64,000 nt of DNA, from IMG/VR virus record IMGVR_UViG_3300049217_000071, positions 124,001 to 188,000 of that record; one strand, given 5' to 3'. The translations under genes and the position numbers were made by a program. Below are positions 31,463 to 59,428 of this stretch, in pieces (position 1 is the stretch's first letter; every line of letters begins with the position of its first letter). The notes below the pieces were generated by a model that saw nothing but the letters and a program-made list of their open reading frames with translations, did not search any database and was not told the origin of the DNA.

Positions 31463-32254
31463 ATGTCAAGCAAGCTAAAAGACCGCATGGAGCGCTATCA
31501 GGCGCAAAGTGATCACAAACTACTGGAACGATTGCCGATTGTTATCTGCATCAATGGTCGAGGTTTCACCAAAGTGACCCAATTGCTGGACAAGCCTTAT
31601 TGTTCCAAGTTAGCGGAATGCCTCATCTCCACTATGATTTACATCTGTCCGATGATTGAGGGAGCTTTGTTTGCCTATCAGCACAATGATGAGATTGTCA
31701 TCATCGCTCGTAATGACCAAACTAACGATACCTCTCCCTGGTTCGATAACAAGATTCAGAAGATTTGTTCGGCTACCGCCTCTATTGCTACGGTGCATTT
31801 CAACAAGTGTGCAGCTTCCTTGCAATTGGATCTAACTGGTGACGCCGCCTTTCTCTCACAGGTTTTCACGCCACCCAATGTGGCAGAAGCGATTCAGTCG
31901 GTTGTTTACAAACAGCAACAGAACTTTCACACTTCCATTCAGTCGGCTTGTTTGTATGAACTGCTCAAGAAGTATAACAAAGATGCCATCAAGGATATGT
32001 TGACTGGACTTTCTATTGATGAGAAAGTAGATTTGCTTTCCCAGGAATGTGGGGTAGATTTCAACAGCTATCCTATTTCTTTCAGGCGTGGGGCGGCTTG
32101 CTATAAGGTTCCTAAGGTGATAGACGGCGTGATGAAAAATAGATGGCAGCTCAACTCGGAATTACCTATCTTTGCTAAAGATCAGTCTTTTCTATCCAAC
32201 CTCTTCAAGAACGGGGCCGATATTTTTAGACAAGAAGGTTTCGATGAACCTTGA
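31463..32254 (+). CDS. tRNA-His guanylyltransferase (Thg1)-like protein
   Basis: LKDRMERY, INGRGF, HNDEI, WFDNKIQKICS, YKQQQN, RRG. Confidence 0.85.
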   Translation: MSSKLKDRMERYQAQSDHKLLERLPIVICINGRGFTKVTQLLDKPYCSKLAECLISTMIYICPMIEGALFAYQHNDEIVIIARNDQTNDTSPWFDNKIQKICSATASIATVHFNKCAASLQLDLTGDAAFLSQVFTPPNVAEAIQSVVYKQQQNFHTSIQSACLYELLKKYNKDAIKDMLTGLSIDEKVDLLSQECGVDFNSYPISFRRGAACYKVPKVIDGVMKNRWQLNSELPIFAKDQSFLSNLFKNGADIFRQEGFDEP

Positions 32255-33252: not shown

Positions 33253-33326
33253 GCTTGCTTAGTATAACGGCATTATATCGCCCTTGTAACGCGATGAAGA
33301 GGGTTCGACTCCCTCCGCAAGCTCCA
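33253..33326 (+). tRNA. tRNA-Thr(UGU)
   Basis: Anticodon loop CTTGTAA, T arm GAGGG-TTCGACT-CCCTC, encoded CCA; C31-C39 mismatch. Confidence 0.88.
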
Positions 33327-33436
33327 ACCCTGTGGGCTCCCCTTTACTGGGGTCAAAGATGCTCAGGTAGTTTGATGTTCTCGCAAGAGAATTATGGTAA
33401 GGTGCTCAATCTAAACATCAAACGAGAGCACATTAG

Positions 33437-33511
33437 GCTGTTGTAGTTCAGTGGCAGAATTCCTCATTGGTAATGAGGCGGTCGTGGGTTCGATCCCCAC
33501 CAACAGCTCCA
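33437..33511 (+). tRNA. tRNA-Thr(GGU)
   Basis: Acceptor GCTGTTG/CAACAGC, CCTCA-TTGGTAA-TGAGG, encoded CCA. Confidence 0.93.
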
Positions 33512-33624
33512 GACTTTGCGTCTCAGGTTAGTGAAACTAACGTCGGCAGAACCCCCGACACAGTGTCCCGACAGTGGCAGTCAAATTGACGATAGATGGA
33601 TGACGGACAGTTGATACAAAGTAT

Positions 33625-33698
33625 GCTGATGTCATATAGTGGCATTATGTCGCCTTCGTAACGCGATCACGTGAGTTCGATTCTCACCTTCAGCTCCA
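33625..33698 (+). tRNA. tRNA-Thr(CGU)
   Basis: Loop TTCGTAA, T arm GTGAG-TTCGATT-CTCAC, encoded CCA; C31-C39 mismatch. Confidence 0.88.
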
Positions 33699-33737
33699 AG
33701 TCCAGTATCTCCCCCGATATTGGGCTTTTTTGTTTTT
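33699..33737 (+). terminator. intrinsic terminator-like hairpin
   Basis: AGTCCAGTATC / GATATTGGGCT stem followed by TTTTTGTTTTT. Confidence 0.6.
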
Positions 33738-33739
33738 AT

Positions 33740-34091
33740 GGGGATGACCTGGTTTCGACCGAGTAAAGACTTATCGAAATGATGCAGACAGAAGAGATTA
33801 CACTTCTCAAAGTAATCACATCTTAAATGCTGATGAATTTGCATTTGCTGAAGCGGCCTAAGAACCCTTCACATTCTTTAGATAAGACTGCTTGAGTAAT
33901 CTAAAGCGTGTAAACCTACAAAGCTGGTTATTGAGTAGGGCTACGATATTCAATAATGAGACCACAGTAGATATCCCGTCAAAGAGAATATTTGACAGCG
34001 TTGTCAATGACGCTAATATTGACTATGTCTGTGAATGATTTTCGATGATGGCGTATTTGGGACTGCGGTTCGATTCCGCACATCTCCACCA
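33740..34091 (+). ncRNA. ssrA: tmRNA; tag peptide (A)ADEFAFAEAA at 33829-33861
   Basis: 5' GGGGATGACCTGGTTTCGAC, 3' GGTTCGATTCC...CATCTCCACCA, G3-U70 pair, TTAAAT resume context, ORF ending AA-stop. Confidence 0.93.
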
Positions 34092-34325
34092 ATGAAGAAG
34101 ATTCTGCTATTAGCATTCTTATTATCGTGCAGCAAAACAGAGCCTGAATTCAAGGCGTCCTACCATATGCTCTGGCAATCGACAGAGATTTTGAGCGGCC
34201 ACGAAACGGTCAAGCTGTATTACGATGTGAGCAACGAAAACCTTTGCTACCTGTATTACTATGATGGTTCGGATGTCGCTCATCAAATGACTTGTGTAAA
34301 ACAACCAAGACTCGTAGGTTTCTAA
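34092..34325 (+). CDS. putative lipoprotein
   Basis: MKKILLLAFLLSC lipobox-like; ATG abuts the tmRNA CCA. Confidence 0.6.
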   Translation: MKKILLLAFLLSCSKTEPEFKASYHMLWQSTEILSGHETVKLYYDVSNENLCYLYYYDGSDVAHQMTCVKQPRLVGF

Positions 34326-34663
34326 TGAAGACAATCATATTGGCTATGTGTTTAGCATTGACGGCTTGTGCTCATAAAGAAGAGCCGCAAGTGCATCACG
34401 AGGTTCAACATTCCTCTCCGCATCCCGAGCCTGTTCCGGTCGCCACCAATCCGTTTGAGAAACCGCCTTCCAAAGCACCTCTTCCGTTTCATGAGGCAGT
34501 GCAAGCGTCCCATTGGGAACAAGTGGGTGGTGGGTTCAAAATGAATGAGAGTTGGTCTCTTTGGACATGGAGAGATTCGGCTAATCACACCACTTGCTAC
34601 TTCTACAATGTTATGGCCGATAAACGGCTAATCGGGCACGGGATGTCCTGTGTGAAAGAATGA
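34325..34663 (+). CDS. putative lipoprotein
   Basis: MKTIILAMCLALTAC lipobox. Confidence 0.65.
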   Translation: MKTIILAMCLALTACAHKEEPQVHHEVQHSSPHPEPVPVATNPFEKPPSKAPLPFHEAVQASHWEQVGGGFKMNESWSLWTWRDSANHTTCYFYNVMADKRLIGHGMSCVKE

Positions 34664-35157
34664 AGTGGCCCCTCCCTAATAAGCTCCTCGTTCTTCCTGA
34701 TCCGGGAGCAGTGGGCGATTTTGCTTTTAGGCGTTCCTTTTACCATCATCCAGGCGTGGATATCTATTGTGATTTTGGGCAGGAAGTGCAAGCCATTGAA
34801 GATGGCACGGTGGTGCATATCGAAAACTTCACTGGTCCCAACGCTAACCCGCCCAGCCCTTGGTGGCACGAAACCTTTTCCATTCTCATCGAAGGTAGGT
34901 TAGGTGTCTTGGGTTATTGCGAACTCAAGCCTCTCCCGCATATTCAAGTGGGGATGAAGATCAAAGAAGGCGACCTACTTGCAACTATCGTGCCAGTCCT
35001 CAAAAAGGATAAGGGCAACGGCACCACGATGTTGCATTTCGAGCACTATATGCACGGCACCAGGCACCACGTCACTTGGGTGCTGGATACGGTCAAACCC
35101 TTGGAACTACTGAATTCCAGGTTTTTACTGGAAGATCTGATGACGGTAATAAAGTGA
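34660..35157 (+). CDS. M23 family peptidase-like protein
   Basis: HPGVDIY, VQAIEDGTV, MLHFE (first His of HxH replaced by Met). Confidence 0.78.
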   Translation: MKWPLPNKLLVLPDPGAVGDFAFRRSFYHHPGVDIYCDFGQEVQAIEDGTVVHIENFTGPNANPPSPWWHETFSILIEGRLGVLGYCELKPLPHIQVGMKIKEGDLLATIVPVLKKDKGNGTTMLHFEHYMHGTRHHVTWVLDTVKPLELLNSRFLLEDLMTVIK

Positions 35158-35170
35158 TATATGTCTAAGT

Positions 35171-35329
35171 ATGTGGTACGGTAAAAACGATGGCAAGTGG
35201 GATGATGATTCGGAGATTGCTCCCAAGCAACTAACTGCTGCCCAAGTAGTAGAAGAATTGAAACGACAAGAAAACATTCAACGATTGAAAGACCTTTTAG
35301 AGGAGTTATTCAATGACAAGCGATACTAA
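35171..35329 (+). CDS. hypothetical 52-aa protein (below ORF-track cutoff)
   Basis: MWYGKNDG...LFNDKRY fills the gap, downstream of TGATATAT. Confidence 0.5.
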   Translation: MWYGKNDGKWDDDSEIAPKQLTAAQVVEELKRQENIQRLKDLLEELFNDKRY

Positions 35330-35354
35330 TCTATAGAACGATTTACTGCGGGAT

Positions 35355-35906
35355 ATGCAACAATGCCCGCAAACTAACACTCAGTCCGTCTACCAACACG
35401 GACTTTCAGTGCGGGATCACCTATTCGAATTGATTTCATTTTTGGAAACTGGCACCATCAGCAATGATTGGAGATTGCCTACTTGGATGCACGAGTATCG
35501 CGAACAATTGCGTTCAGCTCTGCTGCCCAAGGAAGTGATTGAAGAATACGCCATTCACCACGATTGTGGCAAGCCCTACTGTCTCACCATTGATGAACAG
35601 GGTAGGCGACACTTTGCCAATCACGCTGAGACTTCTTACCGCAAGTGGTTGGAGGTGGGCGGTAGTGCAGAAGCAGCCCTGTTGATGAAGATGGATATGG
35701 ATATCCATCAGCTCAAGGCAGCCGGTGTGGAAGAGTTTGCTCAGAGACCACAAGCCATTACGTTGTTGTTAGCGGGATTGGCCGAGGTGCATTCTAACGC
35801 CAAGATGTTTGGTGGTTTGGAATCTGAGTCCTTCAAGATCAAGTGGAATCAAATCAACAAGCGTGGCAAAGCAATTTGCTTCAAACTATATGGGAGATCG
35901 TTATGA
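35355..35906 (+). CDS. HD-domain phosphohydrolase-like protein
   Basis: HGLSV, IHHDCGKP, HAETS, DMDIH. Confidence 0.75.
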   Translation: MQQCPQTNTQSVYQHGLSVRDHLFELISFLETGTISNDWRLPTWMHEYREQLRSALLPKEVIEEYAIHHDCGKPYCLTIDEQGRRHFANHAETSYRKWLEVGGSAEAALLMKMDMDIHQLKAAGVEEFAQRPQAITLLLAGLAEVHSNAKMFGGLESESFKIKWNQINKRGKAICFKLYGRSL

Positions 35907-36253
35907 GTCTATAGATCAAGCCTGGTGATAAGCTTTATGTTATCACCCGAGAAGATATGGCAGCAGGTTATCAGGGAGTGCAGTCTATTCACGCCGGCAT
36001 TCAGTTTGGTGTGGAGCATCCCGAGATTCACAAGGTGTGGTATGAGAAATCAAACTACCTGGGATGGTTGTCGGTGGCAGATGAGATAGCTCTCATTCAG
36101 TTGATTGAGCAAGCTATTCTTCACGACATTACTTTCTCTGTTTTTCGTGAGCCTGATATAGGCAACCAGATTACGGCCATTGCCTTGGCCCCTGGTCCTA
36201 AGTCTAAGAAGTTGTGTGGTAAGTTGAAGTTAGCTCTAAAGGAGGAAAAATGA
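35903..36253 (+). CDS. PTH2-like peptidyl-tRNA hydrolase with in-frame TAG at codon 4
   Basis: GGAG RBS, ATGA overlap with HD gene; MSL*IKPGDKLYVITREDMAAGYQGVQSIHA...FREPDIGNQITAIAL. Confidence 0.8.
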
Positions 36254-36489
36254 ATTGGGTAAATCAAGAGAAGGGCCCCGAATGTTATTGTGGAATGCCT
36301 ACCGCAGTTGTCGTGTTAGAAAGTGGTAGAGCCGAATTGCTTTGCATTTTCCATACCAACGCAGAAGGTGCTATGTTTCCGTTGCCCAAGGAACGCCCAG
36401 AGAACTGGCCCGACCTAACCAAGGACGAGCTGAATGCGTGTATGTTCTTGGGTGATGCCGAAGATCAGGCGAGGGAAGATGACGAGTAA
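36250..36489 (+). CDS. hypothetical protein
   Basis: GGAGG RBS, CYCG motif. Confidence 0.65.
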   Translation: MNWVNQEKGPECYCGMPTAVVVLESGRAELLCIFHTNAEGAMFPLPKERPENWPDLTKDELNACMFLGDAEDQAREDDE

Positions 36490-36679
36490 AATCAACACCA
36501 GATGGGAGTTGGGAATCCCACACGATCCTCGTTCTATAGCGATATACACAGGAATCGCTAAGATTGATGTCGAGGAATGTGGCGATACTTTTGGTTTCAA
36601 ATCCGGTGGTGATGGAGATAACGGAGAAACTCTAATGTATCTCCTAGATGTTTACTTTGAGGATTTGGATAAACAATGA
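36479..36679 (+). CDS. hypothetical protein
   Basis: 66-aa ORF from ATG 36479. Confidence 0.6.
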   Translation: MTSKINTRWELGIPHDPRSIAIYTGIAKIDVEECGDTFGFKSGGDGDNGETLMYLLDVYFEDLDKQ

Positions 36680-36966
36680 GAAAGACTGCTATTGCTTCCT
36701 TATCTGAGCGTTTAGCCGGCTGGACAGATTTGGATGGAGCTGCCTATGAAGTTGGTGCCTGTCTTGGTTTATGGCCCGAGTTTGGAGCCCCATACAATGA
36801 AGATCCTTGGCACGGAGTCAAAGGCATCATGTGGTTTTCTACCGGAGATCACTTTTACCGTTTCCTGGATGGCTTGGTGGAAATGGGTTGGTTGGAACGA
36901 CGAGAAGAGCCTGATATAGCTTATAGGTGGAACGCTTCTTCTGTTTACGATTGGGGTGATGAATAA
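36676..36966 (+). CDS. hypothetical protein
   Basis: 96-aa ORF, ATGA overlap. Confidence 0.6.
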   Translation: MRKTAIASLSERLAGWTDLDGAAYEVGACLGLWPEFGAPYNEDPWHGVKGIMWFSTGDHFYRFLDGLVEMGWLERREEPDIAYRWNASSVYDWGDE

Positions 36967-36992
36967 AATTTCTGTTCTTGGTATAGTGGTCG

Positions 36993-37691
36993 TTAGAGAA
37001 GCCCCCTATTTTTGAGTCGCTTCTTGACAGCGTGAAAGCTTACACCAAGTTTTTTCGACACCTGATAGATGTTTGAGTTTTCTACCATTGCTACCAAGTC
37101 ATCGTTTGTGGGCCAGGTTATTTTGGTGAGTTTATCAAATTTCGTTCTGTTGAAGCATTCTTGACACATTAGGCTTTGGATAGATTTTGGTTTGCCGCAT
37201 TTACAAGTATTCTTGTCTTTATTTTTCTTACTCTTCGTAGTATTTTTGCCACAGAACGTCTCTGTTTGACTATGGCAGTTAGGGCACAATAGGCGCAGAT
37301 TTTCAATCCTATTGTCTGTGTGATTGCCGTTGATATGATCGAGTTGTAAAGATAGCGGTTTACCTAACCAAGAATTTACACCGCAACCTTTACCGTAGCA
37401 TTTTTCTTCAATGAAACCTTCTTTGATTAGTCTGCGTTTTCTGCCTGTGTCTAATATATAGTCGCTGTTTTCCACCAATATCTCCGACCAAGAGATCGTT
37501 CTTTGTGTCGTATTCTTGGAATGTGCTTTGCCGAGGAAGTGCGAGATATCTATCGTCAATTCATTGATAGCGTCTTTGACTATTTTATAGTTTCTTCCCC
37601 TTGGATCAACGTCAAGTTTTCTCAACACTTCCGCAAAAGATGTGCTTTCTTCGATATACTTCTTGATAAGTTGGTTGTCGTAGTTTTGCAT
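36993..37691 (-). mobile_element. HNH homing endonuclease
   Basis: LQLDHINGNHTDNRIENLRLLCPNCHSQT; C-terminal HTH. Confidence 0.9.
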
Positions 37692-37749
37692 AATTGAACC
37701 TCACTTATAACAATGGCCAATTATTAGTAGTCGGGTGCAATCATTTTAT

Positions 37750-37822
37750 GGTCCTATAACTCAAAGGCAGAGATTCGTCTCTAAAACGAAGGGTGCGGTT
37801 TCGAGATCCGCTAGGACCGCCA
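37750..37822 (+). tRNA. amber suppressor tRNA (CUA anticodon), copy 1
   Basis: Acceptor GGTCCTA/TAGGACC, G73, CCA; TTCGT-CTCTAAA-ACGAA arm; T loop TTCGAGA. Confidence 0.87.
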
Positions 37823-37834
37823 GAAGGAAAGACT

Positions 37835-38131
37835 ATGAAATTTCCGTCCCTCAAGAATGAAAATCCACGAACTTGGAAGTGCAAAATCTTTGGATGCAAT
37901 GATGAAGAACTGCCGCTTATCTGGCAAGAACCGGGTGAGAAGCACGGTATCAAGGGATGGAGTTTTGCCACAGCTACCAGAACTTTAACCACCTACATAG
38001 TTCGAGGATGTAAGTGGTGTAGGAATTATAGGACAATCTTCGGTGATGTCGATGAGATTTGGCCTAAATGGTTGTGTGATTGTGAGATTTGTGAAAAGAG
38101 TAGAGTAAATGACACATCTACCCATAGCTAA
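37835..38131 (+). CDS. hypothetical Cys-rich protein
   Basis: ATG 37835 after AAGGA; CKIFGC, CKWC, CDCEIC. Confidence 0.6.
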   Translation: MKFPSLKNENPRTWKCKIFGCNDEELPLIWQEPGEKHGIKGWSFATATRTLTTYIVRGCKWCRNYRTIFGDVDEIWPKWLCDCEICEKSRVNDTSTHS

Positions 38132-39101
38132 CGAACAATATGTGGATCCTTCCCTGGATTTAGAGGAAGAGATCAAGCGTCTCAAAGAGAAACGCAACGC
38201 GGTTATTCTGGCTCACTACTACCAAGAGTCGGAAATCCAAGATGTGGCTGATTTCATTGGCGACTCTTTACAACTATCGCAAGAAGCGGCCAAAACCAAA
38301 GCGGACGTTATCTGTTTTGCGGGCGTCCATTTTATGGCGGAGACGGCCAAGATTCTCAACCCCGAGAAGATTGTGCTTTTGCCTGATTTGGAAGCCGGCT
38401 GTTCTTTGGCGGATGGTTGTCCGGCTGACAAGTTTCAAGCTTGGATTGAATTGCATAAGAAAGATAAGCTGTGCACCGTGGTCAGCTACATCAACTGCTC
38501 GGCCGAGGTGAAAGCTTTGTCGGATTACATCTGCACCTCTTCTAACGCAGAAACTATAATCAGATTCATTGCCGCCAAATGTGCGAAGGGCTGGGGAGAA
38601 CCTAACATTCTTTTCGCTCCCGATAAGCATTTGGGCGCCTATCTGATCAAGAAAACCGGTATCCCAATGACCTTGTGGCAAGGGACTTGTATTGTGCACG
38701 AAACTTTCAGTGCTCGCAAGTTGATTGGCCTCAAGACCAGAAACCCAGATGCTTTGGTTATTGCTCACCCAGAATGTGAAGAGTCGGTGCTAAACTTAGC
38801 AGACCATATCTCTTCCACCACGGGATTGCTCAAGTTTGCCATTGCTAATCCGGCCAAGAAGTTTATTGTGGCCACAGAGTCAGGTATTTTGCATCAGATG
38901 CAAAAGGCTTGTCCTGACAAGGAGTTTATTCCGGCTCCTCCTGAGGCTAACTGTGCCTGCAACGAATGTCCTTATATGAAGAAGAACACTCTGGAGAAGG
39001 TATATCTATCCTTACGAGATATGAAGCCAGAGATTACTCTGTCGGATAGACTTATGGATCGTGCTCGAATTTCGATTGATAGAATGATGGCTCTCAGCTA
39101 A
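38109..39101 (+). CDS. nadA: quinolinate synthase A
   Basis: AVILAHYYQ, GDSL, GVHFMAETAKIL, GCSLA, CIVHE, HPEC, CNECPYM. Confidence 0.96.
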   Translation: MTHLPIANEQYVDPSLDLEEEIKRLKEKRNAVILAHYYQESEIQDVADFIGDSLQLSQEAAKTKADVICFAGVHFMAETAKILNPEKIVLLPDLEAGCSLADGCPADKFQAWIELHKKDKLCTVVSYINCSAEVKALSDYICTSSNAETIIRFIAAKCAKGWGEPNILFAPDKHLGAYLIKKTGIPMTLWQGTCIVHETFSARKLIGLKTRNPDALVIAHPECEESVLNLADHISSTTGLLKFAIANPAKKFIVATESGILHQMQKACPDKEFIPAPPEANCACNECPYMKKNTLEKVYLSLRDMKPEITLSDRLMDRARISIDRMMALS

Positions 39102-39115
39102 TAGGAGAAACTACT

Positions 39116-39280
39116 ATGTGGTTATTGGAATTGATTGGTATTTCGTTGGTAGCAGGAACGGTGCTCGGCATTTCTTGGCGAGTGATTGAAGATTGGTGGG
39201 ATAAGGGCGAAGCTGAAAGGTTGGCTCAGAAGGTGGCTGCTGCGGAAGAAGCCGCTTCTTATACCAATAAACCTGAATAA
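39116..39280 (+). CDS. small membrane protein (below ORF-track cutoff)
   Basis: AGGAG RBS; MWLLELIGISLVAGTVLGISW. Confidence 0.6.
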   Translation: MWLLELIGISLVAGTVLGISWRVIEDWWDKGEAERLAQKVAAAEEAASYTNKPE

Positions 39281-39288
39281 GGTTTGAT

Positions 39289-39361
39289 GCGCCATTAGCT
39301 CAGTTGATAGAGCGGTCGACTCTAAAACGAACGGTCGTGGGTTTGAGTCCCACATGGCGCA
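39289..39361 (+). tRNA. amber suppressor tRNA (CUA anticodon), copy 2; weak anticodon stem, no encoded CCA
   Basis: Acceptor GCGCCAT/ATGGCGC, D stem GCTC/GAGC, loop CTCTAAA, T arm GTGGG-TTTGAGT-CCCAC. Confidence 0.75.
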
Positions 39362-39389
39362 CTAAAACTACTAAAATGATATACTCAAC

Positions 39390-39656
39390 ATGACTAGATT
39401 AGAAATCCAAGCACGCGTTAGAGTAATTCGTGAAGAATTAGAAAACAGGCATAAAACCGGCATGACCAAATTGGCCGATGCTGATGGCATTCCGGCCGAA
39501 GCTATTTTTCAAGCCGCCAAGAAGATCAAAGGTCTCAAACCTCGTGTGGAGTATCCTTCCATCTACGAAAACGCAGAGTTTGTAGGAACGGGCGATGCTC
39601 AGTATTCCATCGAGTGGGAATCACTCGATCCCAACGATCACAGAAACGACAGATAA
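39390..39656 (+). CDS. hypothetical protein
   Basis: 88-aa ORF downstream of TGATATAC. Confidence 0.65.
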   Translation: MTRLEIQARVRVIREELENRHKTGMTKLADADGIPAEAIFQAAKKIKGLKPRVEYPSIYENAEFVGTGDAQYSIEWESLDPNDHRNDR

Positions 39657-39678
39657 TTCAAGGAGAAAAACAAGCTAA

Positions 39679-40218
39679 ATGCAACCAGCCACTACCAACA
39701 ACCAAACACAGTATCGCACCCGTATCAACCAATTCATTCGCGTCCCTCAGATCAGGGTCGTGTTAGCCGATGGCAGCAACGGGGGCATTATGAATACGCA
39801 AGATGCTCTCAAGCTGGCCCGAGAGCAAGGACTAGATCTAATCGAGATCAATCCTAAGAGCGTTCCGCCTGTCTGCAAGATTGCCGACTATGGCAAGATG
39901 AAGTATGACGACAAGAAGAAGCTTCAGAACGCCAAGAAAAACCAGCAGGTGCAAGAGCTGAAAGAGCTAACCTTCCGTCCCAACACGGACGAGGGCGACT
40001 TGGCTCACAAGCTGGAGAAGGCTAAAGAGTTCATTGCGGAAGGCAACAAGGTCAAGTTCACGGTGCGTTTCCGTGGTCGTGAAATTGTTCACGCCAATAT
40101 CGGCAAAGAGAAGCTGGAATGGTTCTTGCAACAGTTAGATGGTTTGGTTGCCCCTAATCCCCAGGTAAATCTGGAAGGGAAATTCATGTCAATGGTGGTT
40201 TCACCTGTTAGAAAGTAA
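39679..40218 (+). CDS. infC: translation initiation factor IF-3
   Basis: RINQFIRVPQIRV, LDLIEI, PPVCKIADYGK, KELTFRP, KVKFTVRFRGRE. Confidence 0.96.
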   Translation: MQPATTNNQTQYRTRINQFIRVPQIRVVLADGSNGGIMNTQDALKLAREQGLDLIEINPKSVPPVCKIADYGKMKYDDKKKLQNAKKNQQVQELKELTFRPNTDEGDLAHKLEKAKEFIAEGNKVKFTVRFRGREIVHANIGKEKLEWFLQQLDGLVAPNPQVNLEGKFMSMVVSPVRK

Positions 40219-40222
40219 GATC

Positions 40223-40528
40223 ATGGCACTCACTAGAACACAAAAAATCCAAAGAGCTAAGCTACTCTTGAAAACCGCCCAAAAAGCTATTGCGCCTTAT
40301 CAAAAAAAGCTAGATGCCGCTGAAGCCGAGCTTCATAGAGCAGAAGTTTCCTTCGATAAGGGTGAGCGTGTTAGAGTAACGCAAACCTGTAAACGTGGCT
40401 GCTGTGTGGAATGCGAATTCAATGGTGTGATAGTCGGCCCTACACCTAACGGTATGTGGAACGTCAAAGCTGATAACAGCGGTCATATTCACGAATACAT
40501 CTATGAAGGCGATATGAAGCGACTATGA
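40223..40528 (+). CDS. hypothetical protein
   Basis: 101-aa ORF. Confidence 0.65.
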   Translation: MALTRTQKIQRAKLLLKTAQKAIAPYQKKLDAAEAELHRAEVSFDKGERVRVTQTCKRGCCVECEFNGVIVGPTPNGMWNVKADNSGHIHEYIYEGDMKRL

Positions 40529-40959
40529 AGTGCCCTAATTGCCTCACCACGATGAAGTGTATTAGAGAGATTCATCACGTGCCCGGACAGCCCGGTAGAG
40601 AACGAATGGATCTGCACTGTATCAAACCAATCAAGGGCAAAGACTATGAGGGGCGTGGGTGCGAACTCATATGTCATATGGGCGTCATCACAGAAGATCC
40701 TAAAGAGTGGGTTTGCCACGATTACAATTTCGAGTTTAGGCACGAAGGGAAACGCTTCTACCTAAGAGGGTATGATTATTTAGTTGATTCAATTCACCAA
40801 ACTTTTCATCGTCCCTACGAAAAAGCTACCATCCTTTCTATAAGTGGTGGAGATCAAATAATGAAGGTAGAATTCATCCCAATTTCTACCGGAGACAATA
40901 TGCACGAAGAAGCCTGGAAACTCTTCCATCGTCTCCGAAACCTGGTTATATTCTCGTAA
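40525..40959 (+). CDS. hypothetical Zn-ribbon protein
   Basis: CPNC; ends RLRNLVIFS. Confidence 0.65.
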   Translation: MKCPNCLTTMKCIREIHHVPGQPGRERMDLHCIKPIKGKDYEGRGCELICHMGVITEDPKEWVCHDYNFEFRHEGKRFYLRGYDYLVDSIHQTFHRPYEKATILSISGGDQIMKVEFIPISTGDNMHEEAWKLFHRLRNLVIFS

Positions 40960-40972
40960 TATAGTAGGTAAT

Positions 40973-41047
40973 GTCCCCGTAGCTCAGCGGAAGAGCAGCG
41001 GTTTCCTAAACCGAAGGTCGCAAGTTCGAATCTCGCCGGGGATACCA
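40973..41047 (+). tRNA. tRNA-Arg(CCU)
   Basis: GTCCCCG/CGGGGAT acceptor, loop TTCCTAA, TTCGAAT, encoded CCA. Confidence 0.9.
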
Positions 41048-48202: not shown

Positions 48203-48553
48203 ATGAACAAAGCGTTTTTACTGAAAGTGAAAAATATTCTCCTAAGCGAAAAAGATGCTATAATGAAGCAGACCAAACGTGATGTCGATATAGACACCGA
48301 TGGAGATGAAACAGATGAAATTCAGGCCGGTATTCTGATTGACATAAACAACCAGCTTACCACTCGCAACTCGGAAAAGCTGGTGCAGATAGCAGAAGCT
48401 CTTCATCGAGTAGACAACAAAACCTATGGGTTATGTTTAGACTGCGGTGAGATGATTCCTGAAAAGAGATTATTGATCAATCCGTATTTTCAGACTTGTA
48501 TTTCTTGTGCCGAAGAGCGCGAAGCCGAAGTCAAACAGCGAAAGAGAGCCTAA
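48203..48553 (+). CDS. dksA: DksA/TraR C4 zinc-finger protein
   Basis: DETDE tip; IAEALHRV...TYGLCLDCGEMIPEKRLLINPYFQTCISC. Confidence 0.88.
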   Translation: MNKAFLLKVKNILLSEKDAIMKQTKRDVDIDTDGDETDEIQAGILIDINNQLTTRNSEKLVQIAEALHRVDNKTYGLCLDCGEMIPEKRLLINPYFQTCISCAEEREAEVKQRKRA

Positions 48554-48554
48554 A

Positions 48555-49142
48555 TTGAATACACTAGTTTTAGAGCAGACCGAAAACGGTGAAGTGCCGA
48601 TGGATGTGTATCAGAAGCTTGCTAATGATCGCATTCTTTTTATTACCGACTATATTGATGATCGTATTGCAACAGACATCATTGCCACGTTGCTACTCAA
48701 AGATCAGGGCGAGGACAGCGATAAAAAGATAACCATCTTCATCAACTCTCATGGCGGTGATGTTCGTAATGCCTTTATGGTTTATGACATCATGCAAATG
48801 ATCCACGCCCCCATCGAAACGGTGTGTATTGGCGCTGCAATGGATGAAGCCGCCCTACTGTTAGCTGGCGGCACCAAAGGGATGCGATTGGCTACCAGGA
48901 ACGCTGTGATTACAGTAAGTCAGTTAGTCCACGACTGGCATATGCATACTAATTTGACGGATGCTAAAAATCTGTTGGAACAATCCCAGATCGATAATGC
49001 TCGTATCTTGGAGATTTATTCTAAGGCCACTGGCAAGAGCGTCAAAGAGTTGAAAGAAGATTTAGATCGACGTATCTTTCTAGATGCTCCCCAAGCAGTG
49101 AAGTATGGTTTGATTGACAAGGTAGTTTCTACCAATAAGTAA
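48555..49142 (+). CDS. catalytically inactive ClpP homologue (ClpR-like)
   Basis: TTG start; DRILF, FINSHGG; CIGAAMDEAA (Ser to Asp) and ITVSQL (His to Ser). Confidence 0.85.
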   Translation: MNTLVLEQTENGEVPMDVYQKLANDRILFITDYIDDRIATDIIATLLLKDQGEDSDKKITIFINSHGGDVRNAFMVYDIMQMIHAPIETVCIGAAMDEAALLLAGGTKGMRLATRNAVITVSQLVHDWHMHTNLTDAKNLLEQSQIDNARILEIYSKATGKSVKELKEDLDRRIFLDAPQAVKYGLIDKVVSTNK

Positions 49143-49150
49143 GGTGAATT

Positions 49151-49750
49151 ATGGGTAAAAAAGAAAAGAAGGATAGTCAGGAATACGATCCGTTTCACCA
49201 GCTATTGATGTTGGGATACGCCGAATCTTATGTCAAGATGTCCAAAAGTCGCGCCATTTTTCTCTCCGAAGACATTACCCAAAGAGTGGGGGCGGAGTTA
49301 TCGGCTATGATGCTCTATTACGATAATATGGATCACGAGTTGCCTATTCATTTGTATATTCATTCCAATGGCGGGGATGTTTCTGGTCTGGCTAACATTT
49401 ATGATGTGATGCAAATGGTCCATGCCCCTGTGGAAACTATCCTACTGGGTAAGTGCTATTCGGCCGGAGCGGTCATCCTGGCGGCTGGTAGCGCCGGCAA
49501 ACGTTATGCTTTGCGCAGTTCCAAGGTCATGATTCACGGTATTCAGTTTGCTTTCCCTATCCCAGGCGATGATATGACTAGCAATAAGAACTACCTGAAG
49601 TTCATTGACGAAAACAACGATAACATAATGAAAATGCTAGCTCACCACACCAAACAGCCTTTGGACAAGATCAAAGCTGACTGCACCCGAGAGTTGTGGA
49701 TGGATGCCAAAAAGGCTAAAGAATACGGTATTATCGATCATATCCTCTAA
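49151..49750 (+). CDS. clpP: ClpP protease subunit, catalytic residues intact
   Basis: YIHSNGG, LGKCYSAGA, KVMIHG, WMDAKKAKEYGIID. Confidence 0.9.
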   Translation: MGKKEKKDSQEYDPFHQLLMLGYAESYVKMSKSRAIFLSEDITQRVGAELSAMMLYYDNMDHELPIHLYIHSNGGDVSGLANIYDVMQMVHAPVETILLGKCYSAGAVILAAGSAGKRYALRSSKVMIHGIQFAFPIPGDDMTSNKNYLKFIDENNDNIMKMLAHHTKQPLDKIKADCTRELWMDAKKAKEYGIIDHIL

Positions 49751-59065: not shown

Positions 59066-59428
59066 ATGAAAGATCAGAATAAAAGAAACAGAAGAAACTT
59101 CAAAAAGGCGCCGAGAGGGGGTGATACTACAGCCGCAGTTTCCGATCCGTTTGCACGTCATGAACCAGTGCAAGCGCAACCACTAGAAGTCAAGGTGTAT
59201 GGAAACAATTTCGATAAAGCTCTCCGAGCTTTTCGAGACCTCGTACAGAAGGAACGCATTCTTTCTGTCTATAAAGAGAAGAAATCGTATGAGAAGCCAT
59301 CTGACAAACGCAGGAGAAAGCGCAACGAATCTAAGAGAAAACTAATGGAACTGTGCAGTAAGGGTGAATGTATTCACTCTGAACACAAAGGCCGCCAGTC
59401 CCAAAGGAAAAATTCTAGACATCAGTGA
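59066..59428 (+). CDS. rpsU: ribosomal protein bS21 homologue with N- and C-terminal extensions
   Basis: VKVYGNNFDKALRAFRDLVQKERIL...YEKPSDKRRRK. Confidence 0.85.
   Translation: MKDQNKRNRRNFKKAPRGGDTTAAVSDPFARHEPVQAQPLEVKVYGNNFDKALRAFRDLVQKERILSVYKEKKSYEKPSDKRRRKRNESKRKLMELCSKGECIHSEHKGRQSQRKNSRHQ

Follow-up and report, generated by a model that had tools for sequence, protein, structure and literature searches.

A putative suppressor-tRNA-dependent switch on an HD and PTH2-like gene pair in standard-code huge phages

What does a phage that keeps the standard genetic code do with transfer RNAs (tRNAs) that read a stop codon? The question is raised by a stretch of 64,000 nucleotides (the window), bases 124001-188000 of the 268,344-bp IMG/VR record IMGVR_UViG_3300049217_000071 (G000), which comes from a moss metagenome. 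Two tRNA genes with the anticodon CUA lie here in an 8-kb region (positions 33253-41047 of the window, the numbering used below unless stated otherwise) together with other genes of translation, and an earlier note on this DNA had taken the whole region for a single system acting on stop codons and stalled ribosomes. We suggest that the functional core is probably a switch that depends on suppressor tRNA and acts on two adjacent, overlapping genes, one coding for an HD-domain protein and the other for a protein with the fold of the peptidyl-tRNA hydrolase PTH2, both of them preceded by a short in-frame leader which ends in TAG. This proposal is drawn from comparison of sequences across related phages. 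The record has a CheckV completeness of 62% and a GC content of 44.7%; its RNA genes were called by ARAGORN and Rfam and its proteins by Pfam.

Leader stop codons before the HD and PTH2-like genes

The leader of the PTH2-like gene occupies positions 35892-35914 of the plus strand. A GGGAG motif (35892-35896) is followed, after a spacer of 6 nt, by ATG 35903, AGT, CTA and the stop TAG (35912-35914), and the frame then stays open for a further 112 amino acids (35915-36253) until TGA at 36251-36253, so that the beginning of the gene reads ATG AGT CTA TAG ATC AAG CCT GGT GAT AAG CTT TAT GTT. The ATG at 35903 overlaps the stop codon of the HD gene as ATGA. In the AlphaFold2 (AF2) model of the PTH2-like protein, strand 1 is formed by residues 6-12 (KLYVITR) and the sole internal methionine is residue 15, downstream of this strand; a start at the corresponding ATG 35957 would therefore delete a core strand. 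The HD gene, also on the plus strand, is built in the same manner. Its leader (35300-35336) consists of GAGGAG (35300-35305), a 7-nt spacer, ATG 35313, six sense codons and TAG (35334-35336), after which six further codons (N D L L R D) lead to Met 35355 and a protein of 183 amino acids, the gene (35337-35906) ending with TGA at 35904-35906. A scan of the genome for leaders of this type (ATG, at most seven codons and TAG, with 90 or more open codons behind them) gave eight matches in G000, one of them immediately upstream of HD. Conservation in the close relative G001 was seen for the HD and PTH2-like leaders only, and not for the other six.

The region between the TAG and the methionine of the HD gene provides an indication that the stop is passed. 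HD homologues are gated in all 20 loci in which they were compared, with ATG, one to six codons and a stop located 6-7 codons before the conserved methionine, the exception being L025, where 13 codons separate the two. At the protein level, the six codons which follow the TAG keep the pattern xxLI(R/K)D while changing synonymously (TTA/CTC/CTA, ATT/ATC, GAT/GAC), and thus appear to be translated in this frame.

The two tRNA(CUA) genes, on the same strand, are situated 1.5 and 3 kb downstream of the gated pair. The first (37750-37822, ARAGORN) has G73, an encoded CCA and a D stem of 3 bp; its Rfam score was 45.2 bits when it was searched singly (gathering threshold 29), the filters used for the whole window having missed this tRNA. 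The second (39289-39362, ARAGORN; 60 bits with Rfam) has A73 and belongs, in an alignment of 80 suppressor tRNAs, to a type common to L030, L035 and L040. Neither closely resembles another tRNA of this genome, the similarity being 64-69%.

Is this arrangement particular to one record? Pattern searches of IMG/VR returned 15 confirmed relatives for the PTH2-like piece and 11 for the HD protein, and a family alignment brought 353, of which 80 loci were kept with flanks of 4-10 kb; the counts from the family alignment refer to these loci. Going upstream from the (D)KLxVxTRxD strand, the first stop met in frame is, in 74 of the 80, a TAG which follows ATG and 0-6 codons, and after clustering at 70% identity the TAG leader is present in 31 of 38 clusters. 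The same leader precedes 3.4% of 1416 other open frames of these loci, which corresponds to a binomial P of ~3e-39, a value that overstates independence because the clusters are related. A tRNA(CUA) lies in the flanks of 24 of the 31 gated clusters, mostly less than 2 kb away, and where a locus has a single tRNA, this tRNA is CUA in about 15 cases out of 19. The gated family is widely spread, with PTH2-like identities down to 35-45% and GC contents from 23 to 61%. Among 185,579 species genomes scanned independently there were 13 PTH2-like matches, all of them on contigs of metagenome-assembled genomes (MAGs) resembling binned huge phages, so the family looks restricted to phages; the TAG gate is present in 11 of these 13 and a tRNA(CUA) within about 600 nt in 10. 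The huge-phage genome LR756500 from GenBank reads ATG AAG TAG ATT and has a tRNA(CUA) 1.1 kb off. That the TAGs are sequencing or assembly errors, or mark decaying pseudogenes, is refuted by this recurrence, which extends over LR756500, MAG contigs and upwards of 100 independent metagenomic loci, as well as by the strong conservation of the downstream proteins, and we give this explanation practically no weight. One leader, that of L004, reads ATG ATA TAG.

The best argument for a decoding of the leader stop by the suppressor tRNA is the co-variation of the stop with the anticodon of the local tRNA, and these sequence comparisons strongly support such a role. In L104 and L108, the seven-codon leader ends in TGA and a tRNA(UCA) is found nearby in place of the CUA one. 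In L051 the leader starts with ATG AAA GAA ACA, as in TAG-gated relatives, but ends in TAA; a tRNA(UUA) was predicted for the corresponding genome and then found, since this 675,678-bp record (G002) contains one suppressor tRNA, UUA, and no CUA. Locus L057 combines a TAG leader with a tRNA(UUA), which is able to read UAG by wobble, and in L003 the TAG is lost (TAC instead) and the adjoining tRNA has an abnormal anticodon loop. No mismatched pair of leader stop and anticodon was found among the loci examined.

The HD and PTH2-like genes also behave as partners. They are fused in the order PTH2-HD behind one leader in two lineages (L045 and L104/L108), and these fusions, together with the ATGA overlap in G000, indicate a partnership. 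The coupling of HD to PTH2, which the earlier note had proposed, is supported by conserved adjacency, overlap and gene fusion. The note had described the PTH2-like gene as amber-interrupted; the TAG at 35912-35914 is indeed in frame, but the HD gene turns out to be amber-interrupted as well, at 35334-35336. As for its suggestion that the phage suppresses UAG by its own tRNA(CUA), the conserved leader TAG and the matched changes of stop and anticodon speak for suppression on the PTH2-like gene.

If UAG is decoded in these two genes, is it perhaps a sense codon throughout the genome? Coverage by open reading frames (ORFs) was compared between the standard code and codes having TAG, TGA or TAA as sense, for the window, the 268-kb record and the related genomes G001, G002 and G004. 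With the standard code, long ORFs cover 0.77-0.99 of every 10-kb bin of G000, and reading TAG as sense brings no larger gain than the TGA or TAA controls do. The same is true for G001 (447,763 bp, 100% complete), which is standard in every 20-kb bin and whose TAG-as-sense gain does not exceed that of the TGA control. Genome-wide recoding was rejected, as no signal was present in the window, in the 268-kb record or in G001, G002 or G004. As a stop, TAG is rare in two of the genomes, ending 14 of 301 ORFs in G000, roughly half of these 14 being spurious, and 24 of 482 in G001; in G004, with 57 of 384 stops, there is no depletion. Two other in-frame TAG candidates of G000, at 93350 and 185426 of the record, were discarded since they correspond to adjacent genes having their own starts, namely an Ntn-hydrolase-like gene with a TTG start in the first case and an MT-A70 methylase in the second.

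A narrower form of recoding would be a TAG-sense code (code 15 type) employed for one set of genes, for example late genes situated in the missing 38% of the record, the TAG of the PTH2-like gene being then an ordinary recoded codon. The incompleteness of the record leaves room for such genes, recoded phages and their relatives typically possess suppressor tRNAs and show a depletion of TAG (Borges et al. preprint), and in L038 a Gln/Glu position of the PTH2-like gene is taken by a second internal TAG. We nevertheless hold this to be very unlikely: the complete genome of G001 and the 268 kb of G000 are in standard code throughout, HD and PTH2-like are the sole TAG-leader genes conserved between the two, and the TAG always stands at codon 2-8 instead of being scattered. 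In G002, the sole suppressor tRNA (at 37754) is an ochre one, yet 612 of 763 stops (80%) are TAA, and efficient suppression would read through most of the phage's own genes. Because an ochre suppressor sits in such a TAA-rich genome, suppression is presumably weak or bound to its context and would serve the gate, not the whole proteome.

Other TAG-leader frames of 104 related loci were clustered in search of a third gated family, and only HD and homing-endonuclease ORFs were recovered. The latter are of HNH type, about 245-335 aa long, and start with a duplicated 5' end of the gated PTH2-like gene (ATG, one to three codons, TAG, KLIVITRRDLxPGYQAVQ), directly upstream of the intact gated gene. 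With approximate ends, they are located at L062:5249-5990, L064:1715-2450, L068:1936-2690, L058:5193-5980 and L085:4984-5990. It seems that the endonuclease makes use of a copied gate.

Two predicted tRNA-end hydrolases and how the switch might work

The protein encoded after the TAG of the PTH2-like gene belongs to a phage-specific family (PHROG 1866, labelled as of unknown function). On its own it scores 21.3 bits with Pfam PF01981, below the cut-off of 23.0, and covers positions 2-114 of the 115 of the profile. The family profile matches the PDB structure 2zv3 of a PTH2 with an E of 1.5e-11 and also matches 1rzw/3erj, 1wn2, 1q7s and 1xty. The AF2 model, of high confidence (mean predicted local distance difference test, pLDDT, 96.7), has Bit1/PTH2, MJ0051 and AF2095 as top Foldseek matches, with TM-scores of 0.70-0.81 and a probability of 1.00. 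The archaeal and eukaryotic enzymes (Bit1, MJ0051, AF2095 and S. solfataricus Pth2) share the same alpha/beta fold over the full length, and alignment with the phage family is found at the RxD, QxxH(A) and acidic-T motifs. E79 (the acidic position, which is kept), D81 (added), Q23, H26 and T87 are invariant in the phage family. Compared with canonical PTH2, a 4-residue deletion follows the acidic motif, which reads E-P-D here, and the GKGK loop is 2 residues shorter and has Tyr, His or Gln in place of its lysine; across the family this position is occupied by Tyr, His, Gln, Val, Ala, Thr or Leu. The catalytic residues of PTH2 we take to be the loop lysine and an aspartate, K18 and D86 in the S. 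solfataricus enzyme.

The HD protein (PHROG 14850, likewise labelled as of unknown function) has no Pfam match in the window, and the HD profile of Pfam (PF01966) matches 3 of 12 relatives, at best with an E of 7e-4. In the alignment of relatives, H15, H22, H69-D70, H90, D114, H118 and H146 are invariant, which corresponds to the metal ligands of the H...HD...H...D type. The AF2 model (pLDDT 93.4) shows a helical HD fold. Its top structural match, by VIA-align, is the class II tRNA nucleotidyltransferase 3wfq_G (residues 259-448, Z 14.3), followed by the HD domains of PhnZ and PgpH (Z 9-10). The family profile matches 3wfo-3wfs around the HD motif with an E of 5e-5, the sole significant sequence match, and neighbours of the model in the AlphaFold database (AFDB) are 'HD domain-containing protein' entries; CCA tRNA nucleotidyltransferases are found there too. 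The HD domain of the E. coli CCA-adding enzyme has phosphatase and 2',3'-cyclic phosphodiesterase activities. The class II enzymes share with the phage protein the HD(C/I)GKP motif context, but the phage HD, for which an activity is so far predicted, stands alone with its 183 aa and has no nucleotidyltransferase head; PolyA_pol-type enzymes are encoded separately by the phage.

In the switch that we favour, ribosomes would initiate at the leader ATG, each gene having its own ribosome-binding site, and would translate a mini-leader of 3 or 7 codons including the start. At the leader UAG they would either terminate with release factor 1 or pass by means of the tRNA(CUA). The full enzymes would then be made by readthrough only, so that the tRNA(CUA) must work for them to appear. 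Because the rest of the genome is in standard code, the tRNA(CUA) genes presumably serve this one operon or are sensed by it. The PTH2-like enzyme would strip a peptidyl or an acyl group and the HD enzyme a phosphate-type block; since both parent families act at tRNA 3' ends, the pair may constitute a module for cleaning, recycling or repairing these ends. Output would be set by the charged suppressor tRNA in competition with the release factor, which could make the gate a timer, switched on once the tRNA genes of the phage are expressed, or a homeostat, and would couple both enzymes to the condition of the phage's tRNA pool and of termination. A steep response to the ratio of charged suppressor to release factor is expected, because sense codons have no release factor as competitor.

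An extension of this scheme, which we regard as speculative and rather improbable, would close the loop: the HD and PTH2-like enzymes would act on the suppressor tRNA itself or on the short peptidyl-tRNAs dropped at the leader stop. Synthesis of the enzymes would then report the amount of usable (charged, undamaged) phage tRNA relative to the activity of the release factor, as in a prfB-like homeostat equipped with a dedicated tRNA. If true, such a loop would protect the tRNA set of the phage from host toxins that hit tRNA 3' ends (acetylation, pyrophosphorylation, extra nucleotides), and it would explain the presence of suppressor tRNAs in huge phages of standard code, even of the ochre one where 80% of the stops are TAA.

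Several observations weigh against the suppressor-dependent switch. In about 85% of PTH2 leaders, the stop is followed by ATT, GTN, ATA, ATC or ATG. The Mycobacterium phages Bxz1 and Myrna have the arrangement SD-N-(A/G)TG-TAG-GTG, in which the spacing of the Shine-Dalgarno sequence (SD) suits the GTG behind the TAG, so that their gates are doubtful. Four loci (L014, L015, L016 and L084) are ungated though they lie beside a suppressor tRNA, and because ungated relatives still adjoin such a tRNA, the link between tRNA and enzyme would not be solely regulatory. Suppressor tRNAs fall into several unrelated types (U1-A72/G73, Gln-like; G1-C72/A73; and one with a long variable arm), and no single inserted amino acid can therefore be assigned. 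The substrate of the PTH2-like enzyme is uncertain as well, since the family does without the canonical loop lysine. At L038:6001-6330 (in G004), close relatives have Gln or Glu where the second in-frame TAG stands, and the tRNA(CUA) next to the gene resembles Ser, Leu or Tyr tRNAs in its long variable arm.

The first two of these points would fit another explanation, in which the leader is an independent mini-ORF and translation re-initiates at the codon after the stop, or at Met 35355 of the HD gene, the suppressor tRNA being incidental or even lowering expression. The stop is mostly followed by ATT, GTN or ATG, and all HD homologues retain the downstream methionine. Under this explanation, however, the stop would vary freely, yet it is nearly always TAG and its changes match the local suppressor anticodon. 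Several lineages have AAC, AGA, GGC, AGC, ACN, GCC or CTN after the stop and no start before strand 1, and in 64 of 69 distinct gated PTH2-like genes there is no ATG, GTG or TTG between the stop and this strand. The six codons before the HD methionine are conserved as protein, and in lineages having a recognisable SD, it serves the leader ATG and lies 14-18 nt away from the codon behind the stop. We consequently judge re-initiation to be quite unlikely. RNA structure at the gates showed no significant fold (Z from -0.28 to +0.96), and a hairpin over the internal HD ATG (Z -1.96) is at best suggestive.

Genes around the gated pair

Does the suppressor-dependent switch belong to a larger system? 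The earlier note had proposed that the 8 kb, with further genes of the window, let the phage suppress UAG, tag and degrade stalled products, recycle peptidyl-tRNA and split ribosomes. All the parts that it listed exist: three tRNA-Thr, a transfer-messenger RNA (tmRNA), HD, the TAG-interrupted PTH2-like gene, two tRNA(CUA), IF3 and tRNA-Arg, as well as a Thg1-like gene just upstream and, elsewhere in the window, a DksA-type zinc finger, two ClpP and bS21. Their wiring into one system is not supported: the parts do not co-occur in relatives and unrelated genes (M23, lipoproteins, HNH, NadA, sugar-nucleotide enzymes) are interspersed between them. What does co-occur in relatives is the core of the HD and PTH2-like genes, with their stop, and the suppressor tRNA; the wide island does not.

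The order Thg1 - tRNA-Thr - (tmRNA) - M23 - HD - PTH2 - tRNA-CUA - (NadA) - IF3 - tRNA-Arg - RmlA - RmlD is kept in the close clade only. An integrated control of termination and ribosome rescue by the whole 8 kb with bS21, DksA and ClpP would agree with the presence of all parts and with this retained order, since G001 still has Thg1, HD, PTH2, two tRNA(CUA), IF3, RmlA, RmlD, ClpP and bS21; the rarity of TAG stops in G000 and G001 is also what would be expected were UAG termination unreliable during infection. Nevertheless, the complete genome of G001 has no tmRNA; in G002 and G004, which have the gated PTH2-like gene and a suppressor, IF3, ClpP, bS21 and an HD homologue were undetected, and in G004 the tmRNA lies 93 kb from the PTH2-like gene. 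Among the 104 related loci, with their flanks of 4-10 kb, a tmRNA is present in only 16, IF3 in 17, Thg1 in 24 and NadA in 6. TAG is undepleted in G004 and the suppressor of the TAA-rich G002 is an ochre one, which argues against an efficient global suppression. The integrated system is for these reasons unlikely. As far as gene order tells, the wider island is a clade-level synteny of translation genes mixed with unrelated genes, and what is conserved as a unit is the suppressor tRNA with the gated gene or genes. The tmRNA, IF3, Thg1, ClpP and bS21 may still act in the same physiology as this unit.

The region is also not isolated with respect to tRNAs. G000 has 53 tRNAs and the tmRNA spread over about 130 kb (32453-165047 of the record), those for one amino acid standing together in a block (Pro, Asn, Asp, Ile, Lys, Ala, Gln, Ser, Val, Gly, Leu, Glu, Arg, Thr), and because the tRNAs span 32-165 kb of the record, the supposed island is the tail end of a far larger tRNA zone. 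One of the tRNAs, at 33569-33647 of the record, was called with a 4-base anticodon (UAAU). No synthetase of the GlnRS/GluRS type or of class IIb (Lys/Asp/Asn-type) and no release factor or other RF-1-domain protein was found in the G000 record.

The genes of the region are the following, in the order of the window. The Thg1-like tRNA 5'-end enzyme (31463-32254, plus strand; Pfam Thg1, 62.2 bits) lies upstream and is kept in the close clade. Three tRNA-Thr genes (33253-33698, plus strand), with the anticodons UGU (33253-33326), GGU (33437-33511) and CGU (33625-33698), were each found by ARAGORN and Rfam and are retained in close relatives. The tmRNA follows at 33740-34091 on the plus strand, matches the full Rfam model RF00023 with 113.7 bits (gathering threshold 47) and encodes the tag ADEFAFAEAA; only some phages of the close clade have it as a neighbour. 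Directly 3' of it, two small ORFs (34092-34325 and 34325-34663) have signal peptides of the lipoprotein type, beginning with MKKILLLAFLLSC and MKTIILAMCLALTAC, respectively; the listed start of the first overlaps the 3' end of the tmRNA. The 8-kb stretch also contains an M23 peptidase (Pfam). Downstream of the gated pair, an HNH endonuclease (36993-37691, Pfam) adjoins the first tRNA(CUA) on the opposite, minus strand. Its homologue occupies the same place in L026, and HNH genes dot the tRNA arrays of relatives. Between the two tRNA(CUA) genes lies a complete NadA (quinolinate synthase; 38109-39101, 382 bits with Pfam), which, because it is present in only 6 of the 104 related loci, looks like a recent insertion of a gene for NAD synthesis. 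After the second tRNA(CUA), the ORF 39390-39656 has no match in Pfam or PHROG; its first 35-48 residues are conserved directly 3' of a tRNA(CUA) in 16 related loci. IF3 (39679-40218, plus strand) has both of its domains (Pfam IF3_N, 96.0 bits, and IF3_C, 91.5 bits) and is, like the tRNA-Arg(CCU) at 40973-41047 (plus strand; ARAGORN, Rfam), a neighbour at the level of the clade. Farther downstream, the DksA/TraR zinc-finger gene (48422-48523) lies directly 5' of two ClpP genes in tandem (48588-49133 and 49223-49747), a pair which G001 has too, and bS21 is located at 59186-59344.

Relation to known systems and significance

The gate recalls, in several of its traits, systems that are well known. 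The E. coli prfB gene, which encodes RF2, has an early in-frame UGA at which termination competes with an alternative decoding through a +1 frameshift. As in the phage operon, an early stop ties the output to the release factor against its alternative, and the product acts in termination, that is, in the hydrolysis of the peptidyl-tRNA ester; the difference is that prfB uses a frameshift and no dedicated tRNA. Lambda bar and other minigenes are tied to the drop-off of short peptidyl-tRNAs and to Pth, and are toxic in pth-deficient cells. They resemble the leaders in being ORFs of two to four codons that end in a stop, but they stand alone, whereas here the mini-ORF is in frame directly before a hydrolase gene and is paired with a suppressor tRNA.

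The mycobacteriophages of cluster C have a PTH2-like homologue, annotated as 'peptidyl tRNA hydrolase' (Bxz1 gp154, Myrna gp84), with about 39-42% identity, a TAG directly before the annotated start and a tRNA(CUA) 130-300 nt downstream. They differ by a bare (A/G)TG-TAG-GTG leader and by having no adjacent HD partner. The tRNAs concerned are annotated as 'tRNA-OTHER' in Bxz1 (L028 3666-3739) and as 'tRNA-Ser' in Myrna (L133 2966-3037), and ARAGORN calls both tRNA(CUA).

Phages in which TAG is recoded to Gln (code 15: Lak, crAss-like and others) carry suppressor tRNAs, and the surveys discuss such tRNAs in the context of genome recoding only (Borges et al. 2021 preprint; PMC13037316). The likeness with the present case is that a phage tRNA(CUA) is needed for genes with an in-frame TAG, that TAG stops are depleted and that recoding has been proposed as a translational regulator. 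The differences are that here the genome is in standard code, that one operon of two genes is affected and that the tRNA is linked to its target; moreover, in code 15 phages the TAGs are scattered in late genes, and here they stand at codon 2-8, in a non-conserved leader, the target being hydrolases of tRNA ends. No hydrolase target is mentioned in the Borges et al. preprint and PMC13037316, where the word 'hydrolase' has 0 occurrences. The authors describing phage XacN1 found no targets for the suppressor tRNAs of that phage. XacN1 is not explained by the present module either, its suppressors being flanked by unrelated ORFs and its PTH2 being canonical and ungated. The literature searched contained no account of PTH2 or HD genes being stop-gated next to a suppressor tRNA, which does not prove that none exists. 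What appears new, judging from the genomes compared, is a decoding by suppressor tRNA that is restricted to one operon in genomes of standard code and has a defined target.

The suppressor tRNAs of standard-code phages were previously without a known target. A target can now be named, namely a conserved and physically linked module of two predicted tRNA-end hydrolases, whose leader stop tracks the anticodon over GC contents of 23 to 61%. One practical consequence is that gene callers mis-start or truncate the gated genes, and short N-terminal leaders ending in a stop are a signature to scan for beside the suppressor tRNAs of phages. If the readthrough is true, the operon would represent a natural switch of small size whose parts are a tRNA and a stop codon, and a new regulatory layer in the takeover of translation by phages. 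It would also point to a phage-only branch of the PTH2 fold and to a stand-alone HD protein of the CCA type as plausible factors of tRNA repair or counter-defence.

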